Below the pieces are notes generated by a model, which had not been told where the DNA came from, did no database searches, and saw only the letters and a list, made by a program, of their open reading frames with translations. Of a stretch of 37,771 bases of DNA, positions 2,469 to 34,479 are shown piece by piece; positions within the stretch are counted from its first letter, which is position 1, and each line of letters starts with the position of its first letter. This DNA is from Hyphochytrium catenoides (taxonomy: Eukaryota > Protista > Hyphochytriomycota). The stretch is from contig FLMG01004027.1 in assembly GCA_900088475.1 (NCBI GenBank), positions 1 to 37,771 on the forward strand, given 5' to 3'. The position numbers and the translations under genes were made by a program.

Positions 2469-4820
2469 TCAGTCCACAACCTTTACCATGTCCTTATATC
2501 TCTCTAGTGCCTTCTCTAGCACCGTCACTGGTGACATTGCCTCCAGTTTGCCGTCAGCGAAGAGACTGAGAAGATTCGCTGAAAAGCCACTAACCAGTGC
2601 TGTGCCGCTCTCATGCTGCGTAACAGGACAAGTCACAGCAGCCTTCTGGTGATGGCCTCTCTCTCCTGGGCGGAGATTCCAAAAGATGAGTCGTGGCAAG
2701 TCATAGCCAGCAGCGCTGAACTCTGCCTTCATTTTCTCAAAGACCGTCGCTTTGTTCTTATTAGGTTTTTGTTTGTCGAACTCCATGTCCGAGAAGATAA
2801 AGATCTGCTGTACCATCTCCTCTTTCTTCAGTTGTGCAGCCTTAGCCTGGCGGAGAATAAGTTGGTAGACAGCTTGAATGTCCGTGTTATAGCCCCAATC
2901 CATCCCTAACATTGCATTATACTTCTCAGGCAGCGTCTGAGAAAGCTCAACCTTGAAGAATCGGGGCTTAGCACTGAAGGTGCACACCAACCCTTGGAAG
3001 GGTGGGAGAGAGCACTCAGCGATCAGAAGGCCGAGAGCGATGGCTACCTCTAAAGGAAGGCCTCTCATCGAGCCTGAGACATCAACAACCGCTAAAGAAT
3101 GAGAAAGTGTGCACTTTCGCTTCATCTGCTCCACGTACTCCTTCCACTGAAGCTCCTTCACTTCATCGAACTGCGTGGGCTCTGGTCCAAGGATCTCGTG
3201 AGGCATCAGCGCTTTGCTGTTGATCTTCTTCTCTCCCTGCGCAACAGACACGAGATACTGAGAGAACCTCTCTGCGTCTCTCTTTTGGAACGCCTGCTTT
3301 CTGTTCTTCATGCAGACTGATGGCACTCTCGCGTAGTCTATTTCTTCCCATTTGCCCGCTGACATCAGGGTCTCAGTGAGACGGGCTGCACCTCTTAAGG
3401 GCGTTAGAAAGTTCTTGGCGTACAGCCGGCGTGCTCTATCAAGATAGACTGGAAATGGCTCCGCTTTATTAGCCTGTTGATGACGAAAGCTGGCTTCAGG
3501 GTAGAGAAGGAGAGCAATTGTTGAAGAGAGAAGTGTGTGCTCATCCTCACTCTTTCCAGGAGATGGGGCCCACTTTGCTGCCAAAGAAGAGACTTCTCTC
3601 TTCTTTGCCTTCTCTCCTTCACTTCGCTTTAGAGCCAGCTTATCACGCTGGAGCTGAGAGGCATATACAAGGGCAACTGCCGTATGGAGAGCGCGGTAGT
3701 CTTTGTTAGTGTTGAAGATGCCTCTGGCCTGGCTGGTCTTCTCTTCTCTTTTCCTCCTCTTGATAGCCTTCGTTCGCTGTGCCTTGGCGAGACGCTTTAG
3801 CCCGTACTGCTGGATTCTTTGGTCGTTGTCCCTCTTGCCCATACGAAAGGCCATCAATTTCCGATTGGCCCTGGGACAGTCTTTGTCAACGATAGCTTTG
3901 TGCCTTTCCCAAGGCGTCTTGTCCTCCAACGTGGCAAGGAGTAACAGCAAAGTGTTGAGGTCCTTCCAGTAGCCTAACTTTACTACGGCAGGAAGGTTGA
4001 AGATCAGAGTCCGCGGATGGTGCTGGTAGAGCCATCGAAGAGCAAAGTAAGCGACTCCTCTCTCTCCCTTTCCCTCTCTCACATCTCTAAGATGCGCCAC
4101 GGCTTGCAACGTCTCTTGCTTCATGGCCTGCCAGCTCGCGGAGAGAAGAGACTTCACTTTCCTGTTTGTTGTACATCCAAAGACCTGAAAGAAGAAGTCC
4201 AGCAGCGGGTTATCAGAGGAAGAGAAGCCATATGCCCCGTTCTCTGTTCTCTGTCTTTTGGTAGGTTCAGGCAGTTGACTTAGCATTGCTTCCACGAACG
4301 CATCTCTTTCCTCTTTCGTCTCTTCTCCCTCTGCAAGCGTCTCTCCTTCTCGCTCTTCTGTCGTCTTCTTTCTTCCTTCTTTCTCTTCTGGCTCTGGGTA
4401 GAAGACCTGGAGAAGCTCCTGCAAGAGCTCTGTCGTCGAAGGATAAGGAGAGACTTTTCTTCTCTTCTTTCTCTCTTTGTGTTCTTCAACCTTTTGTTGC
4501 CTCTGGCCGTCCAGCTCTTCCCCTTCTTCTTCCATTGGCTCCCCAGAAGACGGAGGAGAAGAAGGAGAGAGCTCTTCATCATTCACATCTATCCAGTCTT
4601 CTTCTTCTTTTTCTCCTGCTTCCATGGCTCCTTCTCCTGCTTCTTCTGTCTTCTCAGACGAAGCGCTTGTGTTAGTAGAGACAGTCATCTCTTGCATCGC
4701 CTCTAGATGAAAGCAGATCTTCTTTAGGAGAGAAGGAGCGGCAAGGAGCTCTGGCGCCAGCTGCAGAGAATAGTGCTCCCACTTCTTGTGCAGTGAGCTT
4801 GAGGAGGAAGAGCCGCTCAT
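2469..4820 (-). CDS. DUF2828-family protein with C-terminal VWA (MIDAS) domain, TROVE/Ro60-like; 783 aa ORF
   Basis: Family motifs: RTENGA..SSSDNPLLDFFF, LRDVREGKGER, GYWKDL, SLAAKWAPS, WEEIDYARVPSVCM, ELQW, AVVDVSGSM (MIDAS DxSxS), MDWGYNTD, FIFSDMEFD, LPRLIFWNLR, LVSGFS. The N-terminal ~190 aa are acidic and low-complexity. The frame stays open upstream to a possible acceptor at ~4887, so a further 5' exon is possible. Confidence 0.92.
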   Translation of the reverse strand: MSGSSSSSSLHKKWEHYSLQLAPELLAAPSLLKKICFHLEAMQEMTVSTNTSASSEKTEEAGEGAMEAGEKEEEDWIDVNDEELSPSSPPSSGEPMEEEGEELDGQRQQKVEEHKERKKRRKVSPYPSTTELLQELLQVFYPEPEEKEGRKKTTEEREGETLAEGEETKEERDAFVEAMLSQLPEPTKRQRTENGAYGFSSSDNPLLDFFFQVFGCTTNRKVKSLLSASWQAMKQETLQAVAHLRDVREGKGERGVAYFALRWLYQHHPRTLIFNLPAVVKLGYWKDLNTLLLLLATLEDKTPWERHKAIVDKDCPRANRKLMAFRMGKRDNDQRIQQYGLKRLAKAQRTKAIKRRKREEKTSQARGIFNTNKDYRALHTAVALVYASQLQRDKLALKRSEGEKAKKREVSSLAAKWAPSPGKSEDEHTLLSSTIALLLYPEASFRHQQANKAEPFPVYLDRARRLYAKNFLTPLRGAARLTETLMSAGKWEEIDYARVPSVCMKNRKQAFQKRDAERFSQYLVSVAQGEKKINSKALMPHEILGPEPTQFDEVKELQWKEYVEQMKRKCTLSHSLAVVDVSGSMRGLPLEVAIALGLLIAECSLPPFQGLVCTFSAKPRFFKVELSQTLPEKYNAMLGMDWGYNTDIQAVYQLILRQAKAAQLKKEEMVQQIFIFSDMEFDKQKPNKNKATVFEKMKAEFSAAGYDLPRLIFWNLRPGERGHHQKAAVTCPVTQHESGTALVSGFSANLLSLFADGKLEAMSPVTVLEKALERYKDMVKVVD

Positions 4821-4935
4821 GTTGAGATGCTGTTGTGGGCCTGGGATACTCTTCTCTTCTATGGGATGAGGAGGAAGACTTGTGTCCTGAAGAGAAATCT
4901 GGGCAATGAGCTCAGCACACCTTAGCCACTCGTCT

Positions 4936-5590
4936 GCTCTCTCTCTCTCTCTCTCTCGCTCGCTCTCAGTCTATCTCCCCTTCACATCCACATATTTTGT
5001 TGCTTAAACGCGGTGCGTTCATTCCACACGTCCAATCTAGATTCTCTCTTTCTGTCTCTCTCTCTGTCAGCCTGCATCTACCTCTCTTGCAATTTCTCTT
5101 CCCCATCCCAATAGTTTTGTTCCACGCTCTCTCTCTCTGTCAGTCGGCCACTACCTCTCTTACCCGTCTCTCTGTTATAACACCCGTCCTCTTCCGCTCA
5201 ATTTCACTCTTCTCTCTCTTCCCGACACCTCTCTCTCTCTCTCTCTCATTCTGGCTCCCTCTTCTCTAGCTTTTTCTTTCTCTCTCTCTCTGTGCCGTGC
5301 TGGCTCTACTCACGCTTTGTCTCAACCACATTCTGCTTCCAGCCTCCACCCACAACTTCGCTGCCTCTCTCCTCTATGCTCTGTCTCTCCTCTTCTTGAC
5401 CTACATCTATCGCAAGCACTCATAATTCCTTCTCTCCCTCTCTCTCTTCCTCTCTCTCTCTGTCTCTCTCTTTCTCAATCTCTCTCTTTGTCTCACTATC
5501 ACTCTCCCTCTCTCTGTCTCTCTCTGTCTCTCTCTGTGTCTCTCTCTCTCTCTTACTCTCTCTCTCTCTCTTTCTCTCTGTCTCTTTCTT
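4936..5590 (+). repeat. Intergenic (CT)n-rich low-complexity tract
   Basis: Nearly continuous tctctc/tgtctc runs, densest at 5430-5590. Confidence 0.9.
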
Positions 5591-5718
5591 TATGACTGAT
5601 CTGGTCAAAAAAGGTCGAAGATCTCTCTTTTGGAAGTTTCCGCCTAGGAGTGAGGGTCTTCCCTTTATAACAATCACTCCTCTTTCCTTGGTGCTAAAAT
5701 TATGACAGAAGTATTCTA

Positions 5719-5796
5719 CACATACCATCACTCCTCTCCTCTTCCTTTCCTGGAACCTTCTCACATACCATCACTCCTCTCCTCTTCCTTTCCTGG
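5719..5796. repeat. Perfect 35-bp direct repeat, two copies, period 43 bp
   Basis: cacataccatcactcctctcctcttcctttcctgg at 5719-5753 and at 5762-5796. Confidence 0.9.
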
Positions 5797-7247
5797 GGTG
5801 GGGATCTTTCTTTGTCTGGTCGTCTCTTTTCCTCTTTCTTCTGCCCTCGACCTTTGCCTCCTTACTAGATTCCTTTTCTTCCTCTTTGTCTTGGGCACCA
5901 GCACTCTCTCGCACTCTCGCGGTCGGTAATGATTGATGATGGTGCAGCCAGGCAACCGATCGGTGTTAAAGAACCATGGAAGGCCCCAAAACCACCAACA
6001 AGTAAGAAGAATACGACAGCTGGTGATGCTGGAAGAAGAAGGTTTGGGGAGAGCGAAGGAGAGAAGCGTCTCTCCCCATTGCTGATGCGAGAAGAGTGTT
6101 GAGAGACAATGAGGATCCCCAGCAGCGCGGATAATAACGTGCTGACGAAGTGTCCTTTGTACTATTATCTACCTCTTCTCGTCCACAAAGACCGTCACAG
6201 AAAATTTCTTTTATATTTCTTCAATATTGTTCGTTGTCAAGAGCAGCAGCCAGAGGAAAAAGCTAGAGAACTGCACCCACTGGTGTAGCTGCAATCATCA
6301 ATGTAGCCGTAGCTATAATTATGCTATTATCTCTTCCCATGGTCCACCATCACCATCCCCCGCAGGCCGTCGATGATGAGGAGGAGGAAGGTTAGGCCCG
6401 ATATCTGTTTGTGGCTGTATCGGTAAGAACTCCTAAGAATAGTAATGATATGTTCCTTTATCTTCTTCATATTATTCAAACAGCAGCGATGGCAAACGCT
6501 AAGGGAGAAGAAGAGGGCCATGCCCACTACTATTATTTCTTGCTGATGATAATCAAAAGTGACGAGGGCGATGAATTGGCGGATATTCTTGCTCGCCATA
6601 GAGTAAGTCTACCTTATTTCTTATCTTGATGATGACGATGAGAAGAAGAAGGAGGGGCCATCAACAGCGAGCACGGAGTTTTGGGAGGAAAGAAGACGCG
6701 AAGAAGCAGAAGAGAAGAAAGGAGAAGAAAGGAGAAGAAGAGAGTCGCTATCTAAGGAAGATTGCTCGCTGAGGAGGAAAAAAGATGTTGAGAGCACGAA
6801 ATGTAAGAAAGCCCGAAGGAAATCCTAGCCAGTAACGGCTCCTCAGCATTCCGAACCTGACACTCCTTTTGATGATTGAAGGTATTCTAGATAATACATG
6901 AGTCAGGTTATTGCAAGAAGCAACCACCAAAGAATGTGCTGTCGTGGGCAAGGACGATATCTTTGCTTCTGAGAATGAATCTTCAGATCTTCGATCATCT
7001 TCACCAAAGTCTTCGCATCTTTTGCCTGATATTCTGACTCCGTCTCCGTCTCTCACTCATCGGTCTGGCCCTCTGTCTACGTCTCTCCTTCTCTCTCGAA
7101 GAAGTATTACTCTGTCTCTTAGAGATTGTCTCTCTCCTAGTGGTCTGTGCCTGCCTCTTCACGTTGCCTTTCTCCTTCTTTCGCTTTTGGGGTCGGTGCG
7201 ACGACCTCAGATCCTATATTATTCAGAGCTCAGATCGTAACGTGAGG

Positions 7248-7567
7248 ATGTTTTCAAAGACTCGGCCGGAGGAGCAAAAGATGAGAGAGGAGATGAAAGA
7301 GTTCTGGCAGGAGCACGCTGGACAACTGGAAGTCCAAGACTCTCACCGAGACGCAGAACTGCTCAGAGCGGAAGAGCGGGAGGTAAATCTTATATGTCGC
7401 TTCAAGGCTTCGAAGTTGGCAATGTGCTTCCTCACTCTCTTTGGTTTTCTCACTATCTCTCGTGGCCTACGTGTAGACTCTCTCCCTCTCTCCCTTGGTT
7501 CCAGTAGCCTCTAGATGTATTGACCTTTGTTATCCTTGTTTATTTAGAGAGTTCACCTTAGATCGTC

Positions 7568-7639
<72 letters not shown>

Positions 7640-10600
7640 CCTTCCCTCTTTCTCCCCCTCTTCTCCATCTCTCTCTCTCTTCTCTCTGTCTCACATTTGG
7701 GCTCTCTCTAGATCTTAGCATCGCTGCCCGCCTACGAAGGTGGAGTCGTCGTTGACCTAGGAGCTGGGAATGGCCGATACACCCGTCACCTGGCCGGACA
7801 GGCGAAGGAAGTTATCGGTATCAGGCAGCCTTGGAGGGAATAGTCCCTTATCTTCCTCTCTCTCTTGCCATCCCTCTCTCGTCCTTATCCAAGCATAACG
7901 TATGTGTGTCTCTCTCTCTCACTCTTTACCTCTCTTTGCTCTCCCTATCACTTACTCTTCGTTGTCAAGATCTTCCATCTTTCCCTGCTGTCTGCCTTGG
8001 ATATAGATTGCATGCTCTGACTCTGTCCTCTTCTCTCGGACGGAAAGCTGTGGACTTTATCAAAGAGATCGTCGATGCCAACCGAGCAGCAACCGAGAGA
8101 GACGCCAAGAACGTAAAGTTTGTCTTAGAGGACATCTCCTCTCTCTCAGGCATTGCTGACAAGTCAACAGATTTAGTTCTCGCCAACTCTGTCTTGATGT
8201 ACCTGCCAGAGGTAAGAAAGGGAAGAAAGTGCTACAACTAGAATGGGCTTATCTCTTCAAGGTTGACCTTGTATGGCCTCTCATCTGGGTCATTTAGGGA
8301 AAGGAAGAGAGGAGGTCCATGTTCGTCAGCTGCTTGTCTTGTTGTCGTTTTCGCCTGTCTTCCTATGTGTGTGCTTACCTCTCTTGAAAGTGTTCCTCTT
8401 TTTATCTTTGATCTTTGTTCACCAGTACGATTCTTGTCAGCTCGAAGCACTCAAAGAAAGGCACTCGGCGCCTCTCTCTCTCTCTTCTTCGCCTCTGTTG
8501 CTCCTTTGCCTTTGTTGCTCTCTCTCTCCCTTTTGGCTCCCTAGAGTGATGTGCAGGCTGCTGCACAGCGCGCTTTGGAGGTCCTTAAAGATGGCGGGTA
8601 CTTGGTCTCTCACGAGGCATGCTTCCTGGAGAAGTCTCAGGAGTCCGTCAGCTTGGTTGGGGAGTACAGGCACCCCAGGTTAGAGGACGCAAAGTAGCTC
8701 GTCTCTCTTTCTCATCCATTTTCTCTATTCCTTCCTCAGCTCTTCGGCCTCTAAGACGTCGACCCTTAAATTGATAGATGTGACTCATTTCTAACAAATT
8801 TGTAGCTGAACGTCTTCTATATGCCTGGCATCGATGATTCTCTATGTCTACAGCTTGCTTTATGCTAAAACATATTGTCTCTTTGCAGTTTCTACTGTGA
8901 GGTCATAAGCAAATGCTTTGTCAACGAGGGAGAGGGACTCTTGAGCCGCTTTGACCTTGTTAGCTGCCGACCGCTCGAGAGCTACAGGGCTAAGAAGAAG
9001 ACCAATGGACATCTTCTATGGGTTTGGAAGAAGGCGACAAGAAAAGAGAACGAGGGTAAGGAGGATGAGGGAAGTCCCAAGAAAGAAGAGACTGAGTCCC
9101 ATCCTATGTCTTGAAGTCCGGTGGGGTGTCCAACAGGAGCAGAGACCAAATATATGCAAAAAGTCATAGCGAGGAAGAGAGTTAATGGGAATACAAGGAC
9201 CATAGAGAGTGGGTTGGGCGTGTGTCTCTGCCCCAGAAGAGCTATTTAGTCCGAGGGTATGAGAGAGAGCAAGAAGTGAGAGAAGAGAGAAAAAGATGTG
9301 GCAGACCTCGTAGAAGAGCCATGAGGGGGAGCACCCGCTGTGAGACGCAATGCTATTCTTCTTCTAACTCTAATGACTCAGATGATTTCCGGCGCTTTCT
9401 GGACAATCAGCAGTACTCGCGGACGGGCATCCTGCGCTATGAGAAAATCTTTGGTGATGGCTTCGTTAGGTATGTCCAGTATACAAGGATAAGAGTGATA
9501 ACAATGAAAGAGAGATGTCATGGGCAGGGAAGTGCTTCCATACTCAATCCTGCCGTCTCACTTGCTTCCACGGCTTGTTTTGGGCCGTCGCTTCTCCATA
9601 CTCCAACCAGCACTGGAGGCTTAGAGACCACAGAGGAATTTATTCCATTGCTTCAGCTAAAACCAGGGGAGCGAGTCCTGGACGTCGGCTGCGGAATAGG
9701 AGGAGGAGACTTCTATATCTGTGACAAGTTTCAAGCAGAGGTTGTGCAGGATGAGCAAGATTCTTTCCCACTTTTCGTCGGTGCTCTTCTTTGCTGCGCT
9801 ACTGCTTGTCAGAGTCTCCAACCAACTACTCTTGCCCTTTTCAAGGCTGCACTCTATCTAACGAGGCTCTGCTCTTCCTTCCTGCCACATCAATCCTCGG
9901 ATAACACAGGTAGTTGGCATCGATCTGTCGACTAATATGGTGAACATCGCTTTGGAGAGGGCGGCAGAGCAAGGACGCACGGACGTGATGTTTGAGATCT
10001 GTGATGCGACAAAGAAAGAATATCCTCCAGGTGAGAGTTGAAGACACCGAGACGATTAGAAGGCTGGCATTTCTGGTCAGGTTTCCCGTCTCTTTCTCCA
10101 ATTCTGGGCTTGAGGTCACAATCATGCAGTCCCTCCTTCTCTCAGTGAAAATGGCACCAAGTGGGAGAAGTGTTTAGCTTCCCATTCATCCCTTCATAGT
10201 ACTTTCTCTCTGAAATTGCGCTTCTTCTCATGTATAATTCTGCAGAGTCTTTCGACGTGGTATATTCGAGAGACACCATCCTTCACATAGAGGACAAGCT
10301 TTCCCTTTTCAAGAACTTCTACAAGTGGCTTCGACCAGGCGGCCGAGTTCTTATTACGGATTACTGTTGCGGCCCGCCTCCGCATTCAGAAAGGTGAGCC
10401 GAGCAGAAGACATCGAGCAGTATGGGAATCTTAGGCTTGGAGGGAAGACAAAATGACCATGCTATTAAGAGCTCCCCATTCACCCTGTGTGTTCCTACAC
10501 TTTCGCTGCCCCTCTGCCTCTCTTTCAGATTCGAAAAGTATGTGGCCCAGCGTGGGTATCACCTGCATACAGTGCCCGACTATGGAAAGATCTTAGAAGG

Positions 10601-11340: not shown

Positions 11341-14300
11341 CTACCATCTTCTTCTCCCTTTAGGAGGAGGTGAAGCAACTGTTTTCTTCTCTTCCTTTTC
11401 CTTTTCTCCCTGTAGTGAGTTAGCAATGGCCGGCGCGTAGGGCATCATCAGTAGCTTGCGCACATCTTCGCTGCCACCAGGAGTCACGAGTTTGTAGCTT
11501 CCCCAGACAGGGCTCCGCTCCAGTTCCTCGGACACCTCTTTACCAGCAGTTGGGTTGGCTGCAGGGTCACAGTCCCGGTCAGTTTGAAGAGTATAACGAT
11601 AGACTAGTCAACAGATGGAAATGGGCAGCAATATGACTGGAGGAGAGTCTACATTCGAGCTTACTAAGAGAAGAGGTGAACGTCAGAGAAACACTGTGTG
11701 CTTTGGAGAAGATATCTAGTCTCTGAGGACGGAGTAGCTTACCTGCAAGGCTCTGAAGCAGTCTCGCCGCCAAAGTCTTTGTCTCGGGCAGCGAGCCTAG
11801 ATGAGAGAAGCTTATCACTCCAGAGAGTATGTCGAGGAGCTGTCCCACCATCCCGCTGCGTACCGCCTACGAGTGGGAGATGAAGCTTAGTAAGTGTCCT
11901 AATAACTAGACGTCGAATCTAGCCTTTGACCCCCTTCCTTGAAGCACAATCCTCGACGCCTCTTCTTCTATATTTACTTTTTGGCGTCCAAGTTTATCCC
12001 CTATTGGCTTTTCCTCTTTATCCTTCAAGATGTTTTGCTGACGTGGCTCTTTTGCCCTGTACCTGCTCACAAATCTTCGATGTGGCCTGTGTATGCCGCT
12101 GTAAGGAGGTGAGTAGGATGGCCAAGAGAAGCTGAATATGTCGCGGGTCTCCCTCTCTCATTGCAGGAAGGAGTTGAGCTAAAGCATCTGCGTCCATGCC
12201 TTGAGCTAGGCTATCGATGCATGACGGCATCAAGCAAAGATGGCCGAGGACCTGTATGTGTATGTGGAGTGAGTGTCATTAGGCGCATGTGATAGGGAGA
12301 CAAAGAGTAGGAGAGAGAGACAGAGAGAAGAGAATCGATGTGAAAGAGAGAAGAAAAGAGAGAGAAGTAGAGTGAGAGGAAAGATTAGTGCGACAAGGCT
12401 CGCAAAGATATAATTGGCAAGGCAAGTCGGAAGCTTTCCCCAACGACTTCTTAAGCATATTGAAGACGCTGATAAAGGTTGAAGAGGGACACACTCCCTC
12501 TGCGTACTAACCTGAAGCGCAAGCGTAGCGGCCTGCCCTGCTAGAGTGGAATTTCCCTCGGCAAGTGTGGAGAGAAGCGAGAACAGAGTCCTCATGTACG
12601 GAGGAGCGATGGCGGCCACTACCGTTGCGCATCTAGGGAGACATCACTTATGATGAGATGAACGTGAACTATAGCGGAGAGAGCCGGAAGCTTGGGTAGG
12701 CATAATGCGAGGAAAGGGTGGAAACCAAGCCCTTAAAGGCAGAGCGAAAGTGAGAGATGACTGGGGGATGGGCATTGCGCACCTCGGGCTAGCTAATGCT
12801 GTGTGAAGGGCCTGCAAGCCTCTGAGCCTCAAAAGAGGAAGCTTGGCGTAACCTTCGTCCAGGAGCGAAAAGAGCACGGATATGCCATTCTTTTCCTGCA
12901 GCACTCGATCCATACCTAGAGGTTTAGCCGGTGGAGCAGTGGTGAGACGTGATGGAGGGTCAATAGTTTGAGCTTCTTCTGCCTTGGTTGTCCTCTCTCT
13001 GTGAGTTCTTCTTCATGCGTTCTTTTTACGAGGCGTTGTTGATCAGCTTTCCAGACAGCGGCCGTGACTGTTGTCTAAAAACACCTAAAGACTGTACTTC
13101 CTCTTAAATGCTTACCCTTGGTGAAAGCTAATAAGTGAATGATAGCCTGCGTCATCATCTCCATTCGCTGGACAGAGGGAAGATTTAAGAGAGGAAGAGA
13201 GAAGACAAAAAGGCAGGGCGATCAGATCATCATGAGCTTCCTGCCACTCTCATAAGCTGAACTGATACCTGGCAAACTTCTTCTGAGGGAGATTGAGACG
13301 ATAGGACGTCTTCCTTCAGTTTATCCAGCAGTCCACACAAAAACGACTCCGGCGATGGAATTTTAGTAAGTGGATCCTGTCGCATAGCAAGACAAAGTTC
13401 ATTGACCAGCGTGGATAGAGCTTCTCAGAAAAGGCCGGCTTTAAGAAAGGTCGAAAAGTAGGATAATCATGCTCAAAAGGAGCGCCAGGTCCATCCAGCA
13501 AGTAAAGCTCTTTTGGCTGCCCACCGTCGAGGAAGTGCCCATCCTCTAGGTCGCCGATCACTCACTACTTTCACTCACCGCGTTGAAGTACCGGACATAG
13601 ATGCCGCAGATCTTGAGCTCTCTCTCTAGTGCTTGGTACACGAAACTTTGGGATACTGCCAGGGTGTTCGAGAAGCAGGAGTCAGTGAATCTAAGTCTAA
13701 GACATTCGCGCCATGCGCAGGAGAGGACGAAGCTACTAAGGAACGACAAGGCAAAGGACTTGCAGGGAATGGAAAGACAGGAGAATGGCTTACCAAATCT
13801 CTCCTTATTGTCAATGGCCTTGCCTACTAGCACCCTCATTTCCTCTCTAGTTTCCTCGGTCCACACCAAGGTTGCAGTGGTAGTGTTCCCGCAGAGGACG
13901 CGAAGAAAAGGAGTAGTACCACCCTGGCGGAGTATCTCTTCCAAGGGAGGAGACAGAAGAACCGATATGCTTCTCTTCATTAGGGAAACGCAATCCTCGG
14001 CATTCTTCTCTGGCTCTTCCAACACTCCTTTTCTAAGGTTAGCAGGGGCAGGTGTAGCTTCGTATTCAGACTTCTCATACTCTAGAAGTGACACAAGTGC
14101 TCCGGCCGCCACCTCCGCCTTCTTGCTATTAATGTGCTCAGGATGCAGCTGTGCGACGCAAAAGTAGAGAAGGACAAGATTTAGCTAGAGAGAACATGAC
14201 TGCGCGAGCGATCCGGACTGAGCGCAGCCGACGAGACGTGGGGGCAGAGGGAGAAGAGAATAACTAGAAAAAGAGGGAGCTAAACTTGGTAAGCATGTAG

Positions 14301-17300
14301 GAGAGGAGTAACGTAGGCGGAAGAGGCACTGAAGGTTCTGACCGGTTGATAACCGAGCGCTATTTTTAGTAGATAGAACGGCGCCCCGTGGTCCGCCAAA
14401 TGGCTTATGAGCAGAGACGCGGGCCCCGAGGAGCACGATAGCTCTGCAATTATATCTAGAGCGTATTGACCAGCCAAGTCATCATCGGAGCTACCCAGGA
14501 AGGGTAGCAAAAGCGGAATCTACAAGGCATTCCCCGAGAGTTAGAAGCTAGTTAAAGAGGTCTATGAAGACTTGAGGAGCAGGAAAGCGAGCTTACAAGA
14601 CAGAGCATTGCTTTGCCGAACAGAGATCAACCCTTAGATAGAAGGCGAATGGCAAAGGAACATCGATAACGCCAGAGCCAGTCGAGAAAGCAAAGAAGGT
14701 GAGGAGCAACAGGAAGTCGGCAAGAAGTAGAATACAGCAGAAAGCGGCCCGCACCATCTCTGTTGAGTTTAGAGCCGCGGCTGCTACTCTGCCCTCTTCA
14801 TGCTGCAAAATATAGGACAAAGTGCACAAAATGTCGGCGGCAAGAGCTTCGCAATCCTCTGAACATCGAGGGGAGGGACAAATGAGTTATGATCCCCGGA
14901 GATTCAGCATTTTGATCGATAGACTATGCAGAGAGCAAAATAAGGCATAAATGGCAAGACGAAACAGAGGCAGACACCGTGTTGTGATGACAAGAGTCAT
15001 GACAACTATTGCGGAAAACAGGCTCTTCGAAGAGGAAAGGCATCAGATTATGAACAGAGTCCATCCTCCGCTCCTAGTCTTCGCGGGCGCAGGTGAGCTA
15101 CTGCACCTGCTGAGCTCGGATGTAGTTGTGGCGCCTCAGCGAGCACTTGGGTAAGCAGCCTAATATACTGAGGAGTGGCACACTGCTTCGCGTTGTCGGT
15201 TGAAGCTAGCAGAGAAGTGCACGCCAGAGAAGAGTAAGAGGAGATGTAAGGCTCGTTTAGCTGCATCACATAATTTAAGGTTTCATTCACTTCCTACCTG
15301 GTACAAGATGGGCGAAGGCCGCCATCAGGGACGACAGAAGGCCGGATCTGTCATTCTGATCTTTCTTGAATCGCTCTCCTCGCATGTCGAGTGCCGCCTC
15401 AACGGCTTCCAGCAGATAATGGAAGGCGTTGAACTCTAGAAAGGGACTTTCGTCACTATATCTCCGGAATAAGAGCGTTACGGCTTCCACTAAGACTACG
15501 GCGTCAGCTGCCGCGTACTTAAGATCCGTGATTGAGACAATGAGAGCGAACAGGTACAAGGCCGTCAGTATGCCATGAGGGGATTTGAGTCTCATAGAGC
15601 ATGGCGAGATAGACGGGGAGCGAAAGAAGCGTGCAACAGTCGCCAAGAATTGGAAATCAACTACCTATAAAGTGAAGGAGCACAGCTCTCATCGATTTGG
15701 ACGGAGCACAGCATTCAGAGAGTAGAATGGGCAGAAACCAAGCTTGTCTCGAAGTGACTACGGCCTACCTGCTTCCCTCCTTCTGGCGGGTTTGCCCAAC
15801 AGTTAATAGCTTTGCCGAGGTTGGTTACCAAAAGACACAGATCCCTAATGGGCCAGTCCGGGTACTCCTGCACATCCAACAAATTCCTGAGGTAATAACC
15901 TTCCACCTGCAGATCATACGCTTTTGCAGGGTATCTGCAACCAAGGGGACGAAGTTAGAAGCAATGATATCGGAGCTTCAGATTAATCGCTACGAGCACG
16001 GACAATTTCACCAGCGATCAGGATGGAAAGAAAGAAAGAACTTCGAAGGAGGCTACCCCAGGTTCTATCTCGAATGGTAGATGGGTACTGCATGCTGCAT
16101 GTACTGGGAGAAGAAGTAAAGAGGAAACAAGGGCACCTTATCGGTTCCATTTGTTCTTCGGGGCAGCAGAACTCGTCTTCTGCCTCGTCCCTTTGCATTT
16201 TGGAACCCTTGTGCGACTCCATAAACCTTGAAAGTTCTTCTCTCAGCCTCTCTCTCATTGCCTGACCCCACAGCAGCTCAGGTGTGTCGTTCTCTGAGAA
16301 AAAAGCTGCAGAGAACGCTTCCGATTCATAACGCACAAGGAAGAGGATGACCGCCAGAGGAAAGAAAGGACACAGGGCGCTATTCCGGCAGAGCTGAGGG
16401 CAGCAGACATAGATAGAAGAGGTGGAGTGTCAGGCTCGTATTGGGGTTCGCAATGAGAGTGTGGCCCCTGATGATAAGAGGAACTGTGAATTGACAGAGG
16501 AACATCCGATATGAAGCCAGAATGTAATGGTAAACTCTCGTTAGGTTAGATGTCACGCAAACATGCACAATCTTCTCTCTCCAGCCGAGGACCCCGAGTA
16601 GGTGGACCGAAGACTTATAGGTGATCTGAAGTAAGTAAAGAACAGAACAGCGGACAAAGACGCAGATTTTGCTTCGAAGTTCTTACCCGTCGTAACGGTT
16701 CCTCTTCGGGATATTCCTCTTTCTCCTCGTCCACCAACGTGGGACGAATCTCAAACTTTTGTCGAAGATGAGTCTCTTTCAGGACTATCGCCACTAAAGG
16801 GATGTTGCGTTCTGTCACGTATCTGGGAAAGCATTGTAACGAGACTGTTAGCCGACCTTGTCACGGTAGCTCAGTCAGGGAGAGTTCTGAGCTTGATGAT
16901 GTCGGTCAAATGGGCATGTCCACTGGATACCATTGTTTTGGGGGGTTAAGGACAGCTAGGCTCTGACGGGCTTACGCCGCGTAGGACATAAAGGCTGTGT
17001 GAAATGCAACACTCTCAACAAGCAACGCAGCAAACACAAGGTGGCAAAAAGAGTAAAAAGGACCACTCGAACCTTAACAGGTAATAGAAGATCCCAGTCC
17101 TATAGAGTCTCGGTACAATTGAGGGATTGATCCTGTACAGGATCATCTGCAGCTTCACAGCCCAGAAAAACACCTTCTCGCTGCCGGTACCGAGGAGGGA
17201 CACCAGGAAGGGCAGAATGGATGGAGAAGAAACCGCCGTGATGACAGCAGGGGTCGGAGAAAGGAGTGCACCATATCTAGTGACATTGAGTTAGGAGCCC

Positions 17301-20300
17301 CAAGAGGAACAAACGTGTCGCTTAGCACCGTTCTTAACGAAAGAGTCAAAAGAGGCATCTAGGACAAACGAGTTGTTGGGGCAAAAGGATAGCACAGGAG
17401 GTACTGGTACTTGCGGATTATTTGGATCAGGAAGGAGGCTCTTTCCATAAAGCAGACGAGTCGACGGGTAGCTTCCTGAGTACTGACCTGTGCTTGCCTA
17501 TTGCCGCTTTGCAGATTCGATAGAGAACTTTAAGACAGACCACCGCGATTGAGCGATGGCGGACCATAAGTCGGTCTGCCTGGAGAAAGCGGGATGAAAA
17601 TGAAATGTAGCTTGCCGATGATGGAGGGGTCTTCTCAACAGGAGCCAAGCTGGGCGATACGGAAGCAGCGGAGGGAAGAGCCATCGAGTTCACGGTGCTT
17701 GAGTCCTCGTCATCCTCCTCTTCCTCCTCCTCTTCCTTGTACTCGGATACTTCTTCTGCGTAATCGATGAAGCATGGACCATCATTAGAGGAGGCACATC
17801 ATATAGGGAACGCTTAGAAGCATTAGGGAAAGAAGAAGGATCACAACGGTCACCAGCGAAACGGGGATCAAATTTACAGGCCAAACAGCCCCACATCTGC
17901 AGCAAGCAGTACCTCCCTTCTTGAGTAAAATGAAGCAACCATTGGTAATATTATCTAACGAGAAGGTAGACCGCAAAAACGCTAGGAGTCAAAGACGCAT
18001 TGAAGCAGATGTCCCTTGCCCTGCACCTTCTTGCTCCTTGTTATCTTGCACATCTACTTCCGGAGGACTCCCCACAACATCTGGAGCATTCTTCAACCCA
18101 GCGGACCACGAAGAGGCCACTTCAGCAGGTGAGAGGATTCGTATCGGAAGAGAGGACGACGGACGTAGAGTTTCATCGGGGGAATCTGCTGCGAGTGGAG
18201 AGAGTGATGAGCACTTTATGGATTAGGGCAGAGGCTCCGCTTTTATAAGAAAAAGTGATCAATAAAAAGCTTGGCATCAACCCTGCAGGGGAACAACTTT
18301 GGAGGGCAAGGACCTAGATAGAGGAACAAGACCACGGCGGTGGGAGCCTGTTGTGGGTGATCTGATCTAAACCCTTGACATTGCGACCAACCATCTCACC
18401 TTGTTCTTTAGTCTTTACAGGGGAATAAGAGAAGGAAGACCTCGGACTATCTCCGTCCCGAGGTTCGGACCGCTCATCTTCATCCTCTCCTTCCTCCAGT
18501 GACTCCTTTGCCTCATCCACAACGGCTGGCTTGACCTGCATATTAGATTACGCAAGATGTTGAGAACACTATGTGAGTCCTCTGTCCTCGGATGACGGAA
18601 TGGCCCCTTCTCGCTAAAGCTCTCACCTCTCTTAGCAGCTCTATCACTGCTTCTATGCCCTCGGCCTGGAGAAAGCGCTTCACATTGGCCGGGTTACTGA
18701 TGGCGGCCAACAGAAAGGTCATTATTGCACCTGCCGACCACAGATAGAGATTGAGCGAGATATGAGGAGCCATGACCGACAGCAATCCCATAGAAAACGT
18801 ACGATCACAGAGATGAAAAAGTAGGAAGTCTGTACGTAGTTTGTTGTACATACTCCGGAGTATACACTGCCAATTATTTGCAGTGACAACGGGGTTTGCC
18901 CCTCTTTAAGGCCTTACCTCTTATTGCCAACGGCCAATCACGACAAGCAGAAGACGACGTGGGGGGCCGATTTAGAGCTTGAACAAGTGTAAGAAGAAAG
19001 GGAAGCGAGGGCAGGTGTCCCTTGTACCTCTCGAGCACCTATTGAGGTGAAATCAAGAGAAAATGTCAAAGTGATGACTGACGAGGATCACTAGAGGAGG
19101 ACATGGGAGAGGCATGTGCTGGCAAAGGAACTTGGACTTGACCTGACGCAGACGACAGGACAAGGAGATCATAGTGGCATGACTATCTTCCTACACCTAC
19201 CCTGGTCATCACCGTAAGGCAAAGAAGCTGCACAAGAGGATCTTTCTCTGTCACTACCCGCAGATAGAGTTGAGTCATAAACTCCTCAGGCTTTTCCACC
19301 TATTCATTAACAAGCCCAACGGAAATGGGAACAACAAAGTTAGCTTTTGTCAAGAGCAGCTGTGGATTCTGCAGTGCGGATTCAGTGCGACCACGGATGA
19401 GGTCACGCACCTCTTCTCTAAGGTTTTCCTCCTCATCCAACAGGAGGGCCAAGAAGTATGGACCCACGCGTATCTGAAGGTTATGAGTTAGACAGTTAAA
19501 TGATTAGGACCTCCATCCCTTACTAAAGCCGCAGGAAAGCAGAGTAGATTGACTTCTTTTGATAAGGAACAGGCACTTCCTAGATGCTTGGGATCACAAC
19601 ACAAGTGCAATAGTAGCGACAGAACGGGGCCGCAGGTGGAGGCAACTCAAAACCAGACCGCTATAATCTCCTTTCAAATGGTGGTAAGTAGGAGCGAGTT
19701 ACGGACCTCTCCTTTAAGCCACTCTCTTCTCAACTCAAAAGCCTGGCTGTTCCATCTGACTCTCCCTCTGCTGGCCCCTTCCTGAGCCCAGATCGCCGTT
19801 TGATGATGTAATGGGGATCCGGACTCCAGACTCCAGTCTGTTGGTCTAGAGTCATTGCCCATCTTCATTTCTACATCGCAACGTCCGAAGAAAAGAAGCG
19901 ATAGATTGACAAGATCAGAAGAAAGCCTAGTCTGCCTCTTTAGAAAATGAGCAGATAAACGGGAAAAGGGCTGTGCCATAATAAGATAAGAAGAGTTATA
20001 CGAGGTTGCATGAGAACTGCTGGAAGAGAAGACAGAAATCTAGCAGAGACCGAAAACTTACCGTCAACAACAGGGGAGCTAAGTAATCTAGAAGAGCTCT
20101 TGGAAACAAGTAGCTTTGAAGAACTCTTGGAGAGAAGGCGTTCTTCAGTGTCCACTTCCTGTCCAAGTAGGGACTCCCTAACCTCTGTGAAAAGTAAGAA
20201 CTAAAGTTAGGTTCAGCATGTCCGAGAAGCTGACACCTCTTCCTTCTCCAGCTTCCAGCATCTCGTCTCGTCTCACATCCTCTGCGAAGGTTCGACTACC

Positions 20301-23300
20301 TCACTGACAACAAGCTTACCTGTAGGGCAATGCCGAAGGAAATGGTTCACGCGCTTACGGCTAAGGTCTAACTTAGCGATATGCGACAAGATCGTATCGC
20401 AGATCTCCACTATTCCCTAACAGTCATAAGAAACGGAGCTAAGATCTTCTGCCCAATCGGACACAAGAGCAGTGAGGACGTCGTAAGGTTATGAAACTGC
20501 TGGCGATAGTTTAAGAGGCAAGCCTTATGGAGCGGCGGCTTTGCAAGCAGATATAGTGAAAAGAAGAAACAAGCGTATAGAGAGAGAGAGAGCGGTCAAG
20601 TTGCTGACCTCTTGGCCCCATATAAGATCCTTCTGGTGATGAGACTGCTGGATTCGTTCAAAGAATTCAGGAAGAAGGACTACGCACTTCACCTGCGGTA
20701 AGATGAAAGGCTGTCAGTTGAAATGAAAGGTAGGGTAATAACTTTTTAAGAACAGCGTTTAAGGGCAAGTAGCATGAGAGTAACAGGGAACAGGATGGCG
20801 GTGACCTCTGCACCCCTGGCGTCATATGGCTCCGCTGCCAGCCGTGGCAGCTCCATTAAGTTTCCTCTTTCATCAAACTCCAAGAACTACAGTCGTATAC
20901 GGGACAGCAGCAGCCGAGGGTTAGATAAGCCAAATAGACAAAAGCAACGGCAGCAAACTACAGGCTAAACTTAGAAGTCATCTTACTTTTGTGGGAATGT
21001 CCCCGATAAGTGGCGGAGGGAAGCAGCGGCGGATGAAAGAAGAAGACTCCACGTTCTCATGGATGAGAAGAGCTACAAGTTGACTTGATATGCGACGCTG
21101 TGGCTGCAGGATTACAAAGAGACGCAAAGGAAGAAGTCAGCTCAGCGCAAACAGATCAGAAAGAGAGGTGTACTATCTGCGAGGTTTAGTTGCTCTACAC
21201 AGACAGACGTAGTCCTGTTGAGCACTACTGGCAATACTGATATTCCCTTCTGGGCACATAGCTAACCTTAGATGGGGCAGAGAGCGCGAGGTAGAGTTGC
21301 CAGATTAGAATACCCTCACTGGTGGTGTCGCTCTGTATCATCTGCACCACCTCAGGCGGCTGCTCTAGCACATGCACCTGTGAACAAAAGTCTGTCAGAA
21401 CGCGGGACGAACTATGTTGAACGGTCCTCAATTCTGTCTCTTGCAAACAAACTTCCCCTAGGCACCGTCCCGATCTACTACTCATAATTCTTCAAATGTC
21501 TCTTTTTGCTTCTACCCTTTTTGTCCCAGCCTTTTCTTCCGGTATCGTTCCGTCTTTCTCTTGAGGCTAGCTGGATCGCGTTACCTTGATAAGAAGCGAT
21601 GCTTTCTTGGTTATGAGGAACGAGGGAGAACGACAGAAACCTAAAATTCGAAGTCTGGAGGTGAAAGACACAATGTCTAACGCTTCTGTTACATCCTTAA
21701 ACACCTGTGGACTGCTGCCCCTTCTTCCTGTCACGGAGGCGAAGGGTCAATGGTTAGAATAATGCGTTGAGCCACTCATGGACTGTTATTTCATTCCTTC
21801 CCCTAGATAGCGCTTCATCTTGAGCGGCGCTCAGCCTTTCTTATTCTCCTCTGATTTGCAACTATGTGCTAATTTCTAAAAGATCAGTACCATACAAGCT
21901 CGAGTTCCTCTAGGCTTCTCACAAAAACCAAGTTGCCCGCATTACTGACCTGAAGAAAGGATAACCTCTAACGTGTCCAGTACCGTCCCGTGTAGCAGAG
22001 CCCTTTCAGGATCTCCCTGCATAGCAAGCTTTCTTTGTCAGTAGTGAAGTCGACCGATTATCCTTTTATGATTACAAGGCGCTCTTCTGGGGGTCAGGCC
22101 AAGGGTAAAGCAAAAACTCAACACAATTGTTCCTATGTCGGCAAGCATTTAGACTCTGATACCGGTTGCACTCCGTCGTCGTCATCTTCAGGATGGGACT
22201 CCAGTACTGCATTTGCCAGAAGCTGTGGGTGTTCATCTACCAGGAGGACCTTACGGTTCGCCGTCTCATATCGGCTACCCTTAGAGTCTGAGGCCAAACT
22301 TAACTGCCAATGATGGGACAGAGATGAAGAATCGGGCGGGAGGATGGGGATAGCAGGAAGACGTGGTTTAAAACTGCGTGCGAGCATTGTTATGGCGAAC
22401 AGTGTGAGTTAGGTCCGAAGGCATTCAACGGAGTCCAGAGGAGGATGCACTAATGTAAATGACATCGCAAGGCTCGTTATCCAACTAACCATTGCTTTAG
22501 TCACTTGGGCAGCTGCGTGCGCAACTTCAGTGTTTGAAGATGAGAGAAGCTTGAATACCGCATGTACTCCCTTCTTGCTCTCGGCACTGAGAACAGCCTC
22601 AAAGCCCGCACGGGTGTAGAGGATCCTATGCAAAGCCTGGAACAAAAAGCGTATGGATGGTTTGAATGGGGGAGCTGCCCGTTGGTTTCTTTCCTTTCTG
22701 TTTGAATAGTGCATTTTGTTACACCTAAGTCACCAGGTCGCTTATAAGCTAAAGCGTAGATCGCCCTGATCCCGGACCATTCTTTTCAGTCTCCCGGACT
22801 TCCTACTCTCCGTAACCATCGTAAAGAGAATTTCCTCCGTCGGCTACTTACCAAGAGAATGATGACAAGCGTGCCTTCAGGTATCTCCATGTCTCCCTCG
22901 ATGAATTTGAGTAGGACACCCAAAGCACGTCGATCCTGCCCATGCGAACAGGTTAGGCGCAATTCGGAAGTGCCGCTATCAAACTCCCAATCGCTGTTAG
23001 TCAGTGCTTCTCTGTGTTATCTTGCCTCTCTTTTCCTTGTATCTCTTTCTGTCCTAAACTTAGGGCCCTACCTACTACCATATTGATAATTGCATCTCTA
23101 TTCAGCGCTGCAGCCATCTGCACTGACTTACCTTAGACTTAAGGCCCCGCACTCCAACGTTAACGTTAAAATCCAACAACGTTTGGTCTATCTGATCCAC
23201 ATCTTTAGCAGAAGTCAGGGCTGAGGGTGTTGAAAGCGGAAGGTTGTTGTTAGCTGTAAGGTTGAGATAGAGGTTAAACGAGTGCCCCTTCCAGACATAC

Positions 23301-26300
23301 GCCCTTATAGACTCATTTTGTTCTGCTGTCGCTTCCTGTATGAGAAGTTCCTTCCCTGTCACAGCGCTGTGTCCTTTGCTAATCTACTGGGTTCGGTTCG
23401 TATGTATTGTGACACATACCGCTTGACGCGCTACTTACCCCATATTTTTTTGAGGAGGTAGTCCTCATACTCTGTATGAGGTTGACTGGATCTTGTGCCT
23501 TCTTTGCAGCCCAAAGGAGTCTCGCGTTCTGACCAGGAACAAGCAACCTATCTCAGGCAACCCATAGGAACCAGAGGTGAGGGTACGGCCGTATGTTAGC
23601 CAAGAGGATGACAAGCCGTTTAAACGTACAAGCTGCAGGTAAGGAGATTGGCAGCCACGTGACACTTCCCTTACCCTGCTAGCAGCGCACATGTCAAATA
23701 CATTCGAGAGAAAGAGCTCCCTTGCTCCCTTTGCGGAAATCTTCGAGACACCTCCTGCCACTTCTGAAAAGGAAGGTGGAGGTATCTCGGGGTCGGCAAC
23801 CGAGTGTACCAAAGCTCTTTCATCCTCTTTAGAAAGTCTTGATAGGCCCACGCTGCAAAAGGGAGGGGGCGCGTGTTAGGATTGGTTACACCATAGTAGC
23901 GCAGGTAATAATCAAAGGATGGACATGGCTTTCACAACGTCCTTAGCATGATAGAAGGAGAGCGCATGGAAGAGAGTGGTGAAGTAGTCGCGGCAAAATC
24001 ACTCACTACACGTCTGCACTTCTTTGCGACACCACACAAGGGCTCGTTTGATACTTCTTCAAGCGGCCGTCCCGGAGCTCGAAAGCAAACTGACAGAATC
24101 CTGTCCCCGTCGGGTGCTAATAGCAATGACAAATTTGAAGGAGTAAATCTCATAAGGTCCGTGACTTTGGGATATTACGGCTTACGAGTCCAACCACGAA
24201 GCACATTGCAAAGACAACGTCATATGAGAGTGAGGATCTAGCGCAGTCTCAAAGGTGGCAAATTCAGTGATGGTCACCGTACAACTGAGGTGCCGGTACA
24301 GGGGAGTTCTAGGCCAGAATACAAGGGAGAGCAAGCGGGCTAGGTGCAGATGGCGGCTTCCAGATAGAGACATATCTCAAATTACCTTGACAATATTGAA
24401 AATGTCCCCTACAGCGAATTGCGCGCATATCCTCTTAGTGTCTGGATCTCTCTCCAGCACAGTTGTCGAGGTAAGTGCAAGCACTCGCTCAACTAGGGCC
24501 TAGATATAAATAGAGTTAGATGCAAACCTCTTTTAACGTCGGCTTGTTCTCCTTATAACATCACAAACCCATCCCACGGGGTGATCGCATTAGGAGCTCA
24601 TTGGACTCTCACGGTCAGACCTTATGCGGGGGTTACTTTTCAAGACTCCACGGTAGGCGACACTCCTGCTCTAACCGTACAGTCTTTCATCCGGCGCATC
24701 TAAGTTGGGAGCTATGGTTTATTTCTTTTCAGACGAAGACCGTACCTTGCTACCCTTGCTAACCTTGAAGACTGGCATCTGAAACGTTACCGGGACTGGA
24801 AGATCAAATGTTGCCGTTAGGGCCTCGTACTCCCAAGCATCCTCCACTTCTTCCACTCTCAAAGAGATTGCCAGCCAAGAGCGGAGGTTGTTCCCAATTG
24901 CTAAAAGACGAAAAGCACACAGACGCCAATAAACGAGTTAAGGGGTATCCGAAACAATGAAAGGGTTGCCCAAGCTAAGGGTGCGAAAATTATAATAGTA
25001 TGCGCCATCACAACTAACTCTTGGTCTGAAGAGACCAAAGAATGGGAGGAAGTTGTGTCCACGAAGTGCCCCAAGCATGGTACATGGCTACTTCGAGACA
25101 AAGGCAAACTGTATATAGCCCCGAAGACTGAGATAACACGTGAGGTGGAGACGAATGATGACTTAGGGAGGCAAGAAGGGTAAGTGGTAGACGTAGAAGA
25201 AGTAGAAGTATGACACCAAGCAAAGGCAAACTGACTGACAGCCCTACCCTGTATGAGAGCTTCTCTCTCCTCACACCAGTATCTATGCACCCTGTTGTTC
25301 TGGAAGTAGAGAACCAATCCCGCGGGCTCGGAGCGAAGACGCTGTACTTTGACGATGTCCATAAGGAGAGTTGATGATAGAGTGGAACCCGTTCTCTTGT
25401 CAATTCTGCAGGAAGCAATCATGGCAGGAGCGTGACTTAGGCAGCGGCAGCCTGAAGACGAGTATCGAATAGGGTAGGAGAATGTACAAGAGAGAGAACC
25501 CCAAAAAGGCTGAATAAAGGTAAGGGACCGAGCAGGAGTATCATTTAGGTCCTGGAATACGTTCAGCCAAGGGGAGGCATAAAAACTGAGAAAAAAATTT
25601 GAGAAACAGGACGTCCCCGTGCTATCTGTCAGAGCCACGATGTACCTCTCGAGAGTACTGGACCGGACCGCCAGCAGAACATCGACCGTAACGATTCGCG
25701 TTGATGAACTGTCAGAGAGTTAATGAGCATGAAAAGGTATCGAAGTGAGCCAAAAGGAGCTCATAACGGTGAGAGATGCAAGACAAAAGAAGGCTGTCTA
25801 GGTTCAGATTGCGTAAGGGCAAGCGCTGAGGAGCTGGACCTTTCGCAAAAGTCAATTTTAACAACAGGAGAAGTGACCTCAACCATCTTGCAAGTGAAGA
25901 TCGTCAGAGTAACTACCTCTTCGACGTGCTAAGCTTTTTGGCGGGGAAGGTACTGCCAAAGAGTCCGAAAAGGTTGGGCTTTATCTCTCCGCCTTCTCCC
26001 TCGGGCAACTGCGACAGCAGAGGGCCAGACTGCTCTCTAAGCTTACAATAGGCGGATATGAAGGCATTCCTATGGCGAGAGGTGTAGGTCTCTTTGCTCT
26101 TTCCTATGCTCATGGTAAAGCCCTTCTCATTATTCACATCAGGAGCCAATGTCACGTCCTATAAGCAGAGCATTACACAGGGAAGAAGTGAGAGATGCCG
26201 TGAACGAAGAGGTAGCGGAAATATGGCGGCGAGCGGACAGAGAAGATGACAGAAGACATTGTTCCAGCGTTGGAAGTGAGTTAGGCGCAGAACTGCCCGC

Positions 26301-26544
26301 TAAACCCTACTAGAACCGGGCGGGTAGATACCTTGATGTCACTGTACGCATACTTCTCCTTGATGTCGCCACTACTGGGGTCGATGACATAGAGATACTG
26401 AAGTGAAAGGGCCAGTATCCGCTTCGAAGACCGGAGGAAGCCCTGTCGAGTCACAAAGAACTGGGCACAGACAGCTTCTCCTGTCCTTAGGCGCCATCCC
26501 TCATCTAGGGAGGAGCCAGAGAGACCTGGCTTCGTCTCAGTCAT
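11341..26544 (-). CDS. RME-8/DNAJC13 (GRV2)-like endosomal scaffold; many exons, divergent, no J-domain detected
   Basis: Exon peptides are collinear with RME-8: CAQFFVTRQGFLRSSKRILAL (PH-like 1); VERVLALTSTTVLERDPDT; LLDFNVNVGVRG; ALHRILYTRAGFEA; HHQKDLIWGQE; VRWNSQAFEL..IRVGPYFLALLLDE; PRLYRTGIFYYLLRY..ETHLRQKF; ENDTPELLWGQAMRERL; YYLRNLLDVQEYPDWPIRD; NTTTATLVWTEETREEM; FVYQALERELKICGIYVRYFN; terminal GKEVSEELERSPVWGSYK...RRRW* (stop 11341-11343). The ATG at 26544 is tentative, and not every exon boundary was resolved. Confidence 0.9.
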
Positions 26545-33061: not shown

Positions 33062-34479
33062 CTTCAAAGGGTTATGACGTGACTCGGTTGCAGCTATAGG
33101 TATCGCCGCCGAGGCTCCGGGTCAATGCGCCTTCGTCTCCACTGGTTATGACTAGAGGTTCGCGCAGGCCCAAGCTGCTGCCATATGGTAGAGAATGAGG
33201 AATGATGTATGGGAGTGAGCACTACCGACGGGCAAGAATTACTCGGTAGATCCCCACTCCTCTGTCTTACTTCCTCCATCCCTCTACTCGTACTCCTTGC
33301 TTGGTCATTCCAAAATCCGTCCCAAGCACCAGCTCCTCTTTAGCGATTGAAGTCACTATCAGCCCAGCCCTTGCTTTACCGCAGCAAAGCCGGCAAGGAG
33401 GTCTTCCCACCTGGACAACGAGAAGCATCGTATACCAGTAGGCAGTAGGACCCTGTGATGAGTTTTAGTACCCTATATTATGTGTGCCTTGATTCTTGAT
33501 TCTCCATTGACATGAGCGCGGACTCCTCTCCTTCCACTCCTTTGGAGGTTCACAGTCCTTGAGGATATATATCTAGGTCTCTGTAGAACTACGCTGGGAA
33601 GTCGGTGAAAGCACATGTCCAGGGTGTCCGCTTCGCTCCGATGCTGTCTGGACAGCAGGAGGGCTCTGACTAATATAAGAGGAGTGCTCTGAGCAATACA
33701 TGCCTCGTTCCTCGCTTTTTACACGGTAAAACGGTACAGATACTTTTTGCTCGTTTTATGTGGAATTATCGGAAGGGAGGGACTGGCTTTCCTAGACGAG
33801 GGAGTGAGACGGACGAAAGGGTCAAGACCCCTTACTTACCTGAACAAAGGAAGGGCAAGAAAAATGATTCTGAACTGTCTTCCCTTGTTATCTCCTCTAC
33901 ACTGTGGTGTCATATGTTGGCGATTGAATACTGCCGGCTTCTTCAACCTCATCACCCTCTTCCTTCTCCTTCTCTTAGGTACTTCCTTCTTGTTAGAACC
34001 ATCATGGCATCCAGCATTCCAGGCCCTGGGTTGCTATTCGATGGACGAGCTGCCCAGCTGGTCGAAAGTATCAAGGGATAAGTGCCTACAATGTTACGCC
34101 AAGAAATGTGACTTGTTTAATTCTAGTCCTTGCACCTGAACGGCTAGTTTAGACAAGCTATCACCAACTGAGGAGAAGGAGGACGCTGCCTGCCACCGCA
34201 TTTGTTGTTCTAGAGAGGAGGACCTATCGAAGGAACTGGCGGGGAAGATCGACTGCTGCACATCAGAAACAGCCTGCTGGCTGGTTGTTGGCTATTTTCA
34301 AAGCTTGCCCAGCCCTCACTACTAAGAAGACTCTCTTTCTATGAAAAGGACAAACCTACGGAGGACAGCTCCAAAGCAGCCTTAGATCTATTAGTATTCT
34401 TAGGCGGCAAGGACCGCCTCTCTATCTCCTTTCAAGGTCACCCGTCATCATGATGCAAAGATTGGAAAAATTGTTTATA

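Follow-up and report, generated by a model that had tools for sequence, protein, structure and literature searches.

A minus-strand gene of Hyphochytrium catenoides is probably a fast-evolving RME-8/DNAJC13 homolog that has lost the J domain from the DNA itself. Proteins of the RME-8/DNAJC13 family are named after, defined, and mechanistically explained by a J domain, through which Hsc70 is recruited to strip clathrin and ESCRT-0 off endosomes. The DNA analyzed here (assembly GCA_900088475.1, contig FLMG01004027.1, positions 1 to 37,771) is referred to below as the window, and all coordinates are those of this 37,771-nt stretch.

The gene, which spans approximately 26544 to 11344 on the minus strand, is by its sequence a homolog of RME-8/DNAJC13, since the hallmark blocks of the family align collinearly from the N- to the C-terminus. 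When the best-conserved exon (14148-13795) was used as a phmmer query against 1.84 billion representative proteins, the only matches were three weak ones, P0001-P0003 (E-values 8.5e-5 to 2.9e-4), each of which is 2400-2800 residues in length and carries both RME-8_N and DnaJ (i.e., canonical, J-containing RME-8 proteins). When these three proteins were compared to the window with tblastn, the matches were collinear. Word searches seeded with P0003 were then used to collect approximately 68 RME-8 proteins with a broad distribution among eukaryotes, and the 46 of these with at least 2200 residues were used to build an RME-8 profile of 2375 positions. All stop-free pieces in the window were compared with this profile individually. 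Twenty-four stop-free pieces on the minus strand fell in strict profile order, from profile column (hmm) 21 at 26478 to hmm 2288 at 11491, with the best E-values being 4e-19, 1e-15, 4.5e-14, 6e-10, and 2e-9. The assignment to RME-8/DNAJC13 made in a preliminary description of this DNA is thus upheld by collinear profile matches over the whole length of the gene.

Membership in the family is further indicated by the IWN repeats, where the Trp is aligned in three repeat blocks (DLIWGQE, PELLWGQ, and ATLVWTE) and the Asn is replaced in each; a fourth IWN repeat was not detected in the profile alignment of the gene. In the three blocks (20609-20665, 16229-16393, and 13795-13989), loss of the Asn of Ile-Trp-Asn has yielded IWG, LWG, and VWT, respectively, with retention of the Trp. 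Additional family motifs aligned in the gene were LYRTGIFYYLL, IYVRYFN, and, near the C-terminus, SPVWGSYK. Ten single exon pieces screened against Pfam revealed no match to RME-8_N (PF19432) at E <= 1 and none to DnaJ, and a PDB sequence search with the two exons that flank the J-domain site recovered only chance matches to calpain (E ~0.3).

The features recognized in the gene are compiled in the table. The start of the gene is the ATG at ~26544 in a crude gene model that was generated with our own program, and the end (~11344) was placed where the final open stretch with a profile match stops. This model comprised 63 exons that encode 2146 amino acids and included approximately ten micro-exons, because of which its details are not trusted; the micro-exons also weaken the case for an intact whole open reading frame.

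Table. Features of the RME-8/DNAJC13-like gene in the window, with positions in the RME-8 profile (hmm) and scores where available.
Feature	Coordinates	Strand	Remarks
RME-8/DNAJC13-like gene	11344..26544	-	many short exons, introns ~50-350 nt; ends approximate
N-terminal PH-like region (FFVTRQ..KRILAL..YAYSDIK)	26332..26478	-	hmm 21-69, 7.4 bits, collinear
IWN repeat 1 (DLIWGQE; Trp kept, Asn replaced)	20609..20665	-	hmm 778-796
Conserved solenoid block (..LYRTGIFYYLL)	17066..17278	-	hmm 1099-1169, 36.4 bits, E 4.5e-14
IWN repeat 2 block (DTPELLWGQAMRERL)	16229..16393	-	hmm 1202-1256, 41.8 bits
Pre-J exon (YYLRNL..YPDWPIRD..NCWANPPEGGKQ)	15769..15934	-	hmm 1288-1318, 21.1 bits, E 2e-9
Predicted GT..AG intron, 251 nt, AAG acceptor, J-domain site	15518..15768	-	~66 profile columns missing
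Optional in-frame segment, 49 codons	15518..15664	-	exonic if TAG acceptor 15665 used
Post-J exon (YAAADAVVLVEAVTLLFRRY..HYLLEAV..)	15298..15517	-	hmm 1413-1448, -0.5 bits, collinear
IWN repeat 3 block, two exons (..ATLVWTEETREEM.., ..IYVRYFN)	13573..13989	-	hmm 1644-1743, 53.2 bits, E 4e-19
C-terminal block (..SPVWGSYK)	11491..11559	-	hmm 2266-2288, 3.8 bits, collinear

Like RME-8/DNAJC13 (GRV2 in plants), the gene maintains the same order of conserved blocks over >2000 profile positions, and it shares with these proteins the PH-like region, IWN-type repeats (with the Trp in three), YYLRNL..PDWPIxD, LFxRY..LLEA, and VWxxYK. Unlike RME-8/DNAJC13, the gene is without the central J domain of ~70 residues and its HPD triad; the Asn of its IWN repeats is replaced, its overall similarity to the family is very low, and no GYF-like region was detected.

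Both at its canonical site and elsewhere in the 37.7-kb window, the J domain is cleanly absent from the sequence. The preliminary description had located this site between the PDWPI.D and ILF.R blocks, as is indeed the case in real homologs, and had described an intron of 251 nt there (15518-15768), the donor, acceptor, and phase of which we read from the sequence in the same way. The pre-J exon follows a ttgcag acceptor and ends on a complete codon (...NPPEGGKQ; YPDWPIRDLCLLVTNLGKAINCWANPPEGGKQ) at the donor CAG/GTAGGC, with the GT at 15768-15767. The post-J exon begins at 15517 with YAAADAVV... (YAAADAVVLVEAVTLLFRRYSDESPF), downstream of a tract rich in pyrimidines and of an AAG acceptor that ends at 15518, such that both junctions of the predicted intron are in phase 0. 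In the RME-8 profile, the HPD column is hmm 1371. The pre-J exon, when its unaligned tail is included, reaches ~hmm 1338, and the Trp in this tail corresponds to the conserved EW(R/K) that precedes the J domain. The post-J exon starts at ~hmm 1405 when its unaligned end is added; the match is weak but is at the expected collinear place. The ~66 columns that are absent between these two positions would correspond only to the J domain and short linkers.

Several searches were consistent with this absence. Translation of 15518-15768 in the three minus-strand frames revealed no His-Pro pair, as had been claimed, and stops in every frame. Across all six frames of the whole window, HPD triplets were present only twice, at 27567 and 16025, and both were in a non-J context. 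The Pfam DnaJ model did not match the open reading frames of the intron at E <= 10. A profile of the J domain only (74 columns, from 46 RME-8 proteins) was run with all filters disabled on 2080 pieces, each 8 residues or longer, from both strands of the window; the best match had an E-value of 1.4, and there was none within the intron. The claim of an RME-8 homolog that lacks a J domain therefore stands, as no J-like piece was identified in the window with the Pfam DnaJ model, the J-only profile, or the scan for HPD. The feature that marks J-domain proteins (PF00226, a J fold with an HPD loop) was not found in the gene; lacking a central J domain with HPD, the gene would be a family homolog by descent and not a DNAJC protein.

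We also considered a degenerate J domain, where the exon tail ...GKAINCWANPPEGG was read as a decayed KYHPDKNPEGR, and rejected it because homologs place this stretch at the pre-J segment LDEW+aE.ek.P. Screening of the intron against Rfam and for repeats yielded nothing of note. An imperfect tandem duplication of 26 nt (73% identity) is present at 15674-15725, in the 5' part of the intron.

The exons on either side of the intron are open and correctly phased, as previously described, and have coding-like codon usage. Codon log-odds were +0.17 to +0.18 per codon for the pre-J exon and +0.20 to +0.22 for the post-J exon; values of +0.18 and +0.22 were reached by 8% and 2%, respectively, of null pieces drawn from the antisense strand.

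An alternative acceptor (TAG, 15667-15665) would start the exon at 15664, in frame and without stops, and would thereby shorten the intron to 104 nt and add 49 residues (VVDFQ...ITDLK). The preliminary description had noted this acceptor and the non-J character of the 49 residues, and we likewise found no likeness to the J profile or to Pfam in the segment. In this alternative, the gene would be equally J-less and would carry at the J site a hydrophobic 49-residue insert, either a decayed remnant or a replacement element, a reading that we consider plausible, if somewhat short of an even chance. The insert is in frame and stop-free, and the TAG at 15665 comes after a pyrimidine tract, with no earlier AG that would preserve the frame. 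In the crude model, CAG or TAG acceptors are used by the seven best-anchored introns, whereas the acceptor at 15518 is AAG, and the gene-model program selected 15665 both with and without homology anchors. Against exonic use of the segment, its codon log-odds of -0.04 were reached by 71% of non-coding (antisense) null pieces, and values this low were seen in only 10% of confident exon pieces. Moreover, the insert is 64% pyrimidine, as is the remaining intron, when compared to 45-51% in the flanking exons, and neither the J profile nor any column of the RME-8 profile is homologous to it. AF2 modeling of the alternative exon produced a low-confidence model (pLDDT 48.8). The absence of similarity to the J profile or Pfam in the 49 residues also bears on the type IV J-like feature (a J fold without HPD), of which the segment gives no sign. 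A donor-like hexamer, GTAGTT, directly follows the alternative TAG (15665-15667). With splice signals pointing one way and composition the other, the 251-nt intron is slightly preferred over the 104-nt alternative, and neither splice form, as read from the sequence, contains a J domain.

Loss of the J domain appears to be rare among relatives. The HPD was conserved in 46/46 full-length RME-8 homologs, and PF00226 was identified in all of the ~68 collected RME-8 matches except P0066 and P0067. These two, which by their Pfam lists were candidates for other J-less RME-8 proteins, were rejected because their gene models are truncated inside the J domain. A search of the literature identified no description of a natural J-less RME-8, and a scan of JGI metagenomes with the best exon was blank. 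The suggestion in the preliminary description that the gene might represent a specialised paralog subfamily found no support, given that the phmmer search of 1.84 billion representatives recovered only three canonical, J-containing RME-8 proteins and the metagenomes were blank; with no relative of the J-less form in the protein library or in the JGI metagenomes, the term subfamily is unsupported. Comparison of intron positions, considered as a pointer to an exon-loss route, provided no insight, as the closest homologs fetched are intronless: the genes for P0001, P0005, P0013, and P0014 lack introns, and in the Triparma gene the J domain is split by an intron at residue 1502/1503. The intronless P0001 (L001:3001-11496, Logan SRR14578324) is a canonical RME-8 of 2831 amino acids with a C-terminal PDZ domain (PF17820, PF13180, and PF00595; residues ~2750-2830) that was absent from the other homologs checked with Pfam.

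The remainder of the window encodes several unrelated features. A single-exon open reading frame at 2472-4970 (minus strand; 833 amino acids) combines DUF2828 with DUF7788 (TROVE/vWA-like) and has an N-terminus of ERER low complexity. Its best relative is a JGI protein with 62% identity, and its named relatives (from plants, green algae, Mortierellaceae, and Daphnia) are at most 42% identical, which suggests that close relatives of the organism are missing from the sequences collected. Genes for an ODR4-like protein (PF14778, two exons) and a class-3 lipase (PF01764) were identified at 28392-29702 and 31703-33121, respectively, both on the minus strand. Long GA/AG-rich stretches at 1-1800, 5400-5800, and 7550-7800 encode ER/RE repeats in several frames.

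Extreme divergence, the lack of a Pfam RME-8_N match to single exons, the score of -0.5 bits for the post-J match, and the AAG acceptor at 15518 all count against excision of the J domain from an otherwise maintained gene. An alternative is that the gene is a decaying or unexpressed RME-8 paralog (a pseudogene or nearly so) in which loss of the J domain was part of erosion. The collinear pieces of the gene total ~268 bits, when compared to 1658 bits for the RME-8 of Leishmania and 2004 bits for that of Blastocystis (both excluded from profile building), and even the most diverged of the canonical RME-8 proteins tested thus scores approximately six times higher. Parts of the profile were unmatched, among them the GYF region, hmm 1450-1550, and hmm 1880-2160; the protein was not found in a collection of 15 billion proteins, and the crude model needs about ten micro-exons. 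However, 23 collinear anchor blocks that together comprise ~1,000 codons are free of stops, and residues characteristic of the family (the Trp of the IWN repeats, LYxTGxF, YVRxxN, and VWxxYK) have been retained along the whole length of the gene. In addition, codon usage in the exons is coding-like, the J deletion preserves the frame, and part of the divergence and of the lack of database relatives can be attributed to the organism having no close sequenced kin. We therefore regard decay as unlikely; were the gene merely a decaying paralog, its J-less state would be of little consequence. It is far less probable that the assembly lost a real J-encoding exon between 15769 and 15517, by collapse or omission. 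The assembly does have a gap in the window (17 N at 520-536), but it is the only one: there are no N and no long repeats near the site, where the sole repeat is the imperfect 26-nt tandem duplication, and the donor, pyrimidine tract, acceptor, and phase-0 junctions of the interval are all those of a well-formed intron.

Removal of the J domain from a homolog that has otherwise been maintained is the reading that we prefer. In other RME-8 proteins, the J domain lies between two solenoid helices; here, these helices are predicted to be encoded by adjacent exons, the joining of which across a phase-0 intron would keep both the frame and the remaining architecture. The architecture retained would comprise an N-terminal PH-like region, at least three IWN-type repeats with Trp, and a C-terminal block. 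Such a product would be unable to stimulate the ATPase of Hsp70/Hsc70 itself (in cis). It would most likely act as a chaperone-independent endosomal scaffold, or as a partner or competitor of another RME-8 paralog.

The J domain is a constant, central feature of RME-8 in reviews and in a cryo-EM preprint (PMC13618431), and the same 2026 preprint describes DNAJC13 as an antiparallel homodimer in which the J domain is inserted in ARM3 (PMC13618431). Given this antiparallel arrangement, a J-less protein could pair or compete with a second RME-8 paralog. Mutation of the HPD triad in human DNAJC13 results in stronger PI(3)P binding and in stronger endosomal localization or residence (PMC12404652), and overexpressed DNAJC13 constructs with engineered J-domain mutations disturb endosomes (PMC12404652). 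Since HPD mutants bind endosomes more strongly, the residence of a natural J-less form on endosomes would be expected to be more stable. Like the engineered HPD mutants (PMC12404652), which offer the closest guide to its likely behavior, the H. catenoides product would retain the PH-like and solenoid parts but would not activate Hsp70; unlike in those mutants, which are laboratory constructs of a human protein, the loss is natural, and the predicted protein is far more divergent. The gene also resembles type IV J-like proteins, where the motif that stimulates Hsp70 has been lost in a J-protein lineage, but differs from them in that type IV proteins keep a recognizable J fold and the gene is without any detectable J-like sequence.

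A broader possibility is that RME-8 in this lineage has been wholly uncoupled from Hsp70, with a J-excised paralog and a paralog with an HPD-less J domain and no canonical copy, which we consider improbable, more so than decay of the gene. If true, it would indicate that endosomal sorting by RME-8 is possible without J-domain activity, perhaps via J-less or heterotypic antiparallel dimers. More generally, a natural, in-frame J-less copy would raise the question of what RME-8 does without Hsp70, and would agree with recent findings in which the J domain additionally keeps membrane binding in check. Such a copy would also supply a natural separation-of-function allele for comparison with engineered mutants.
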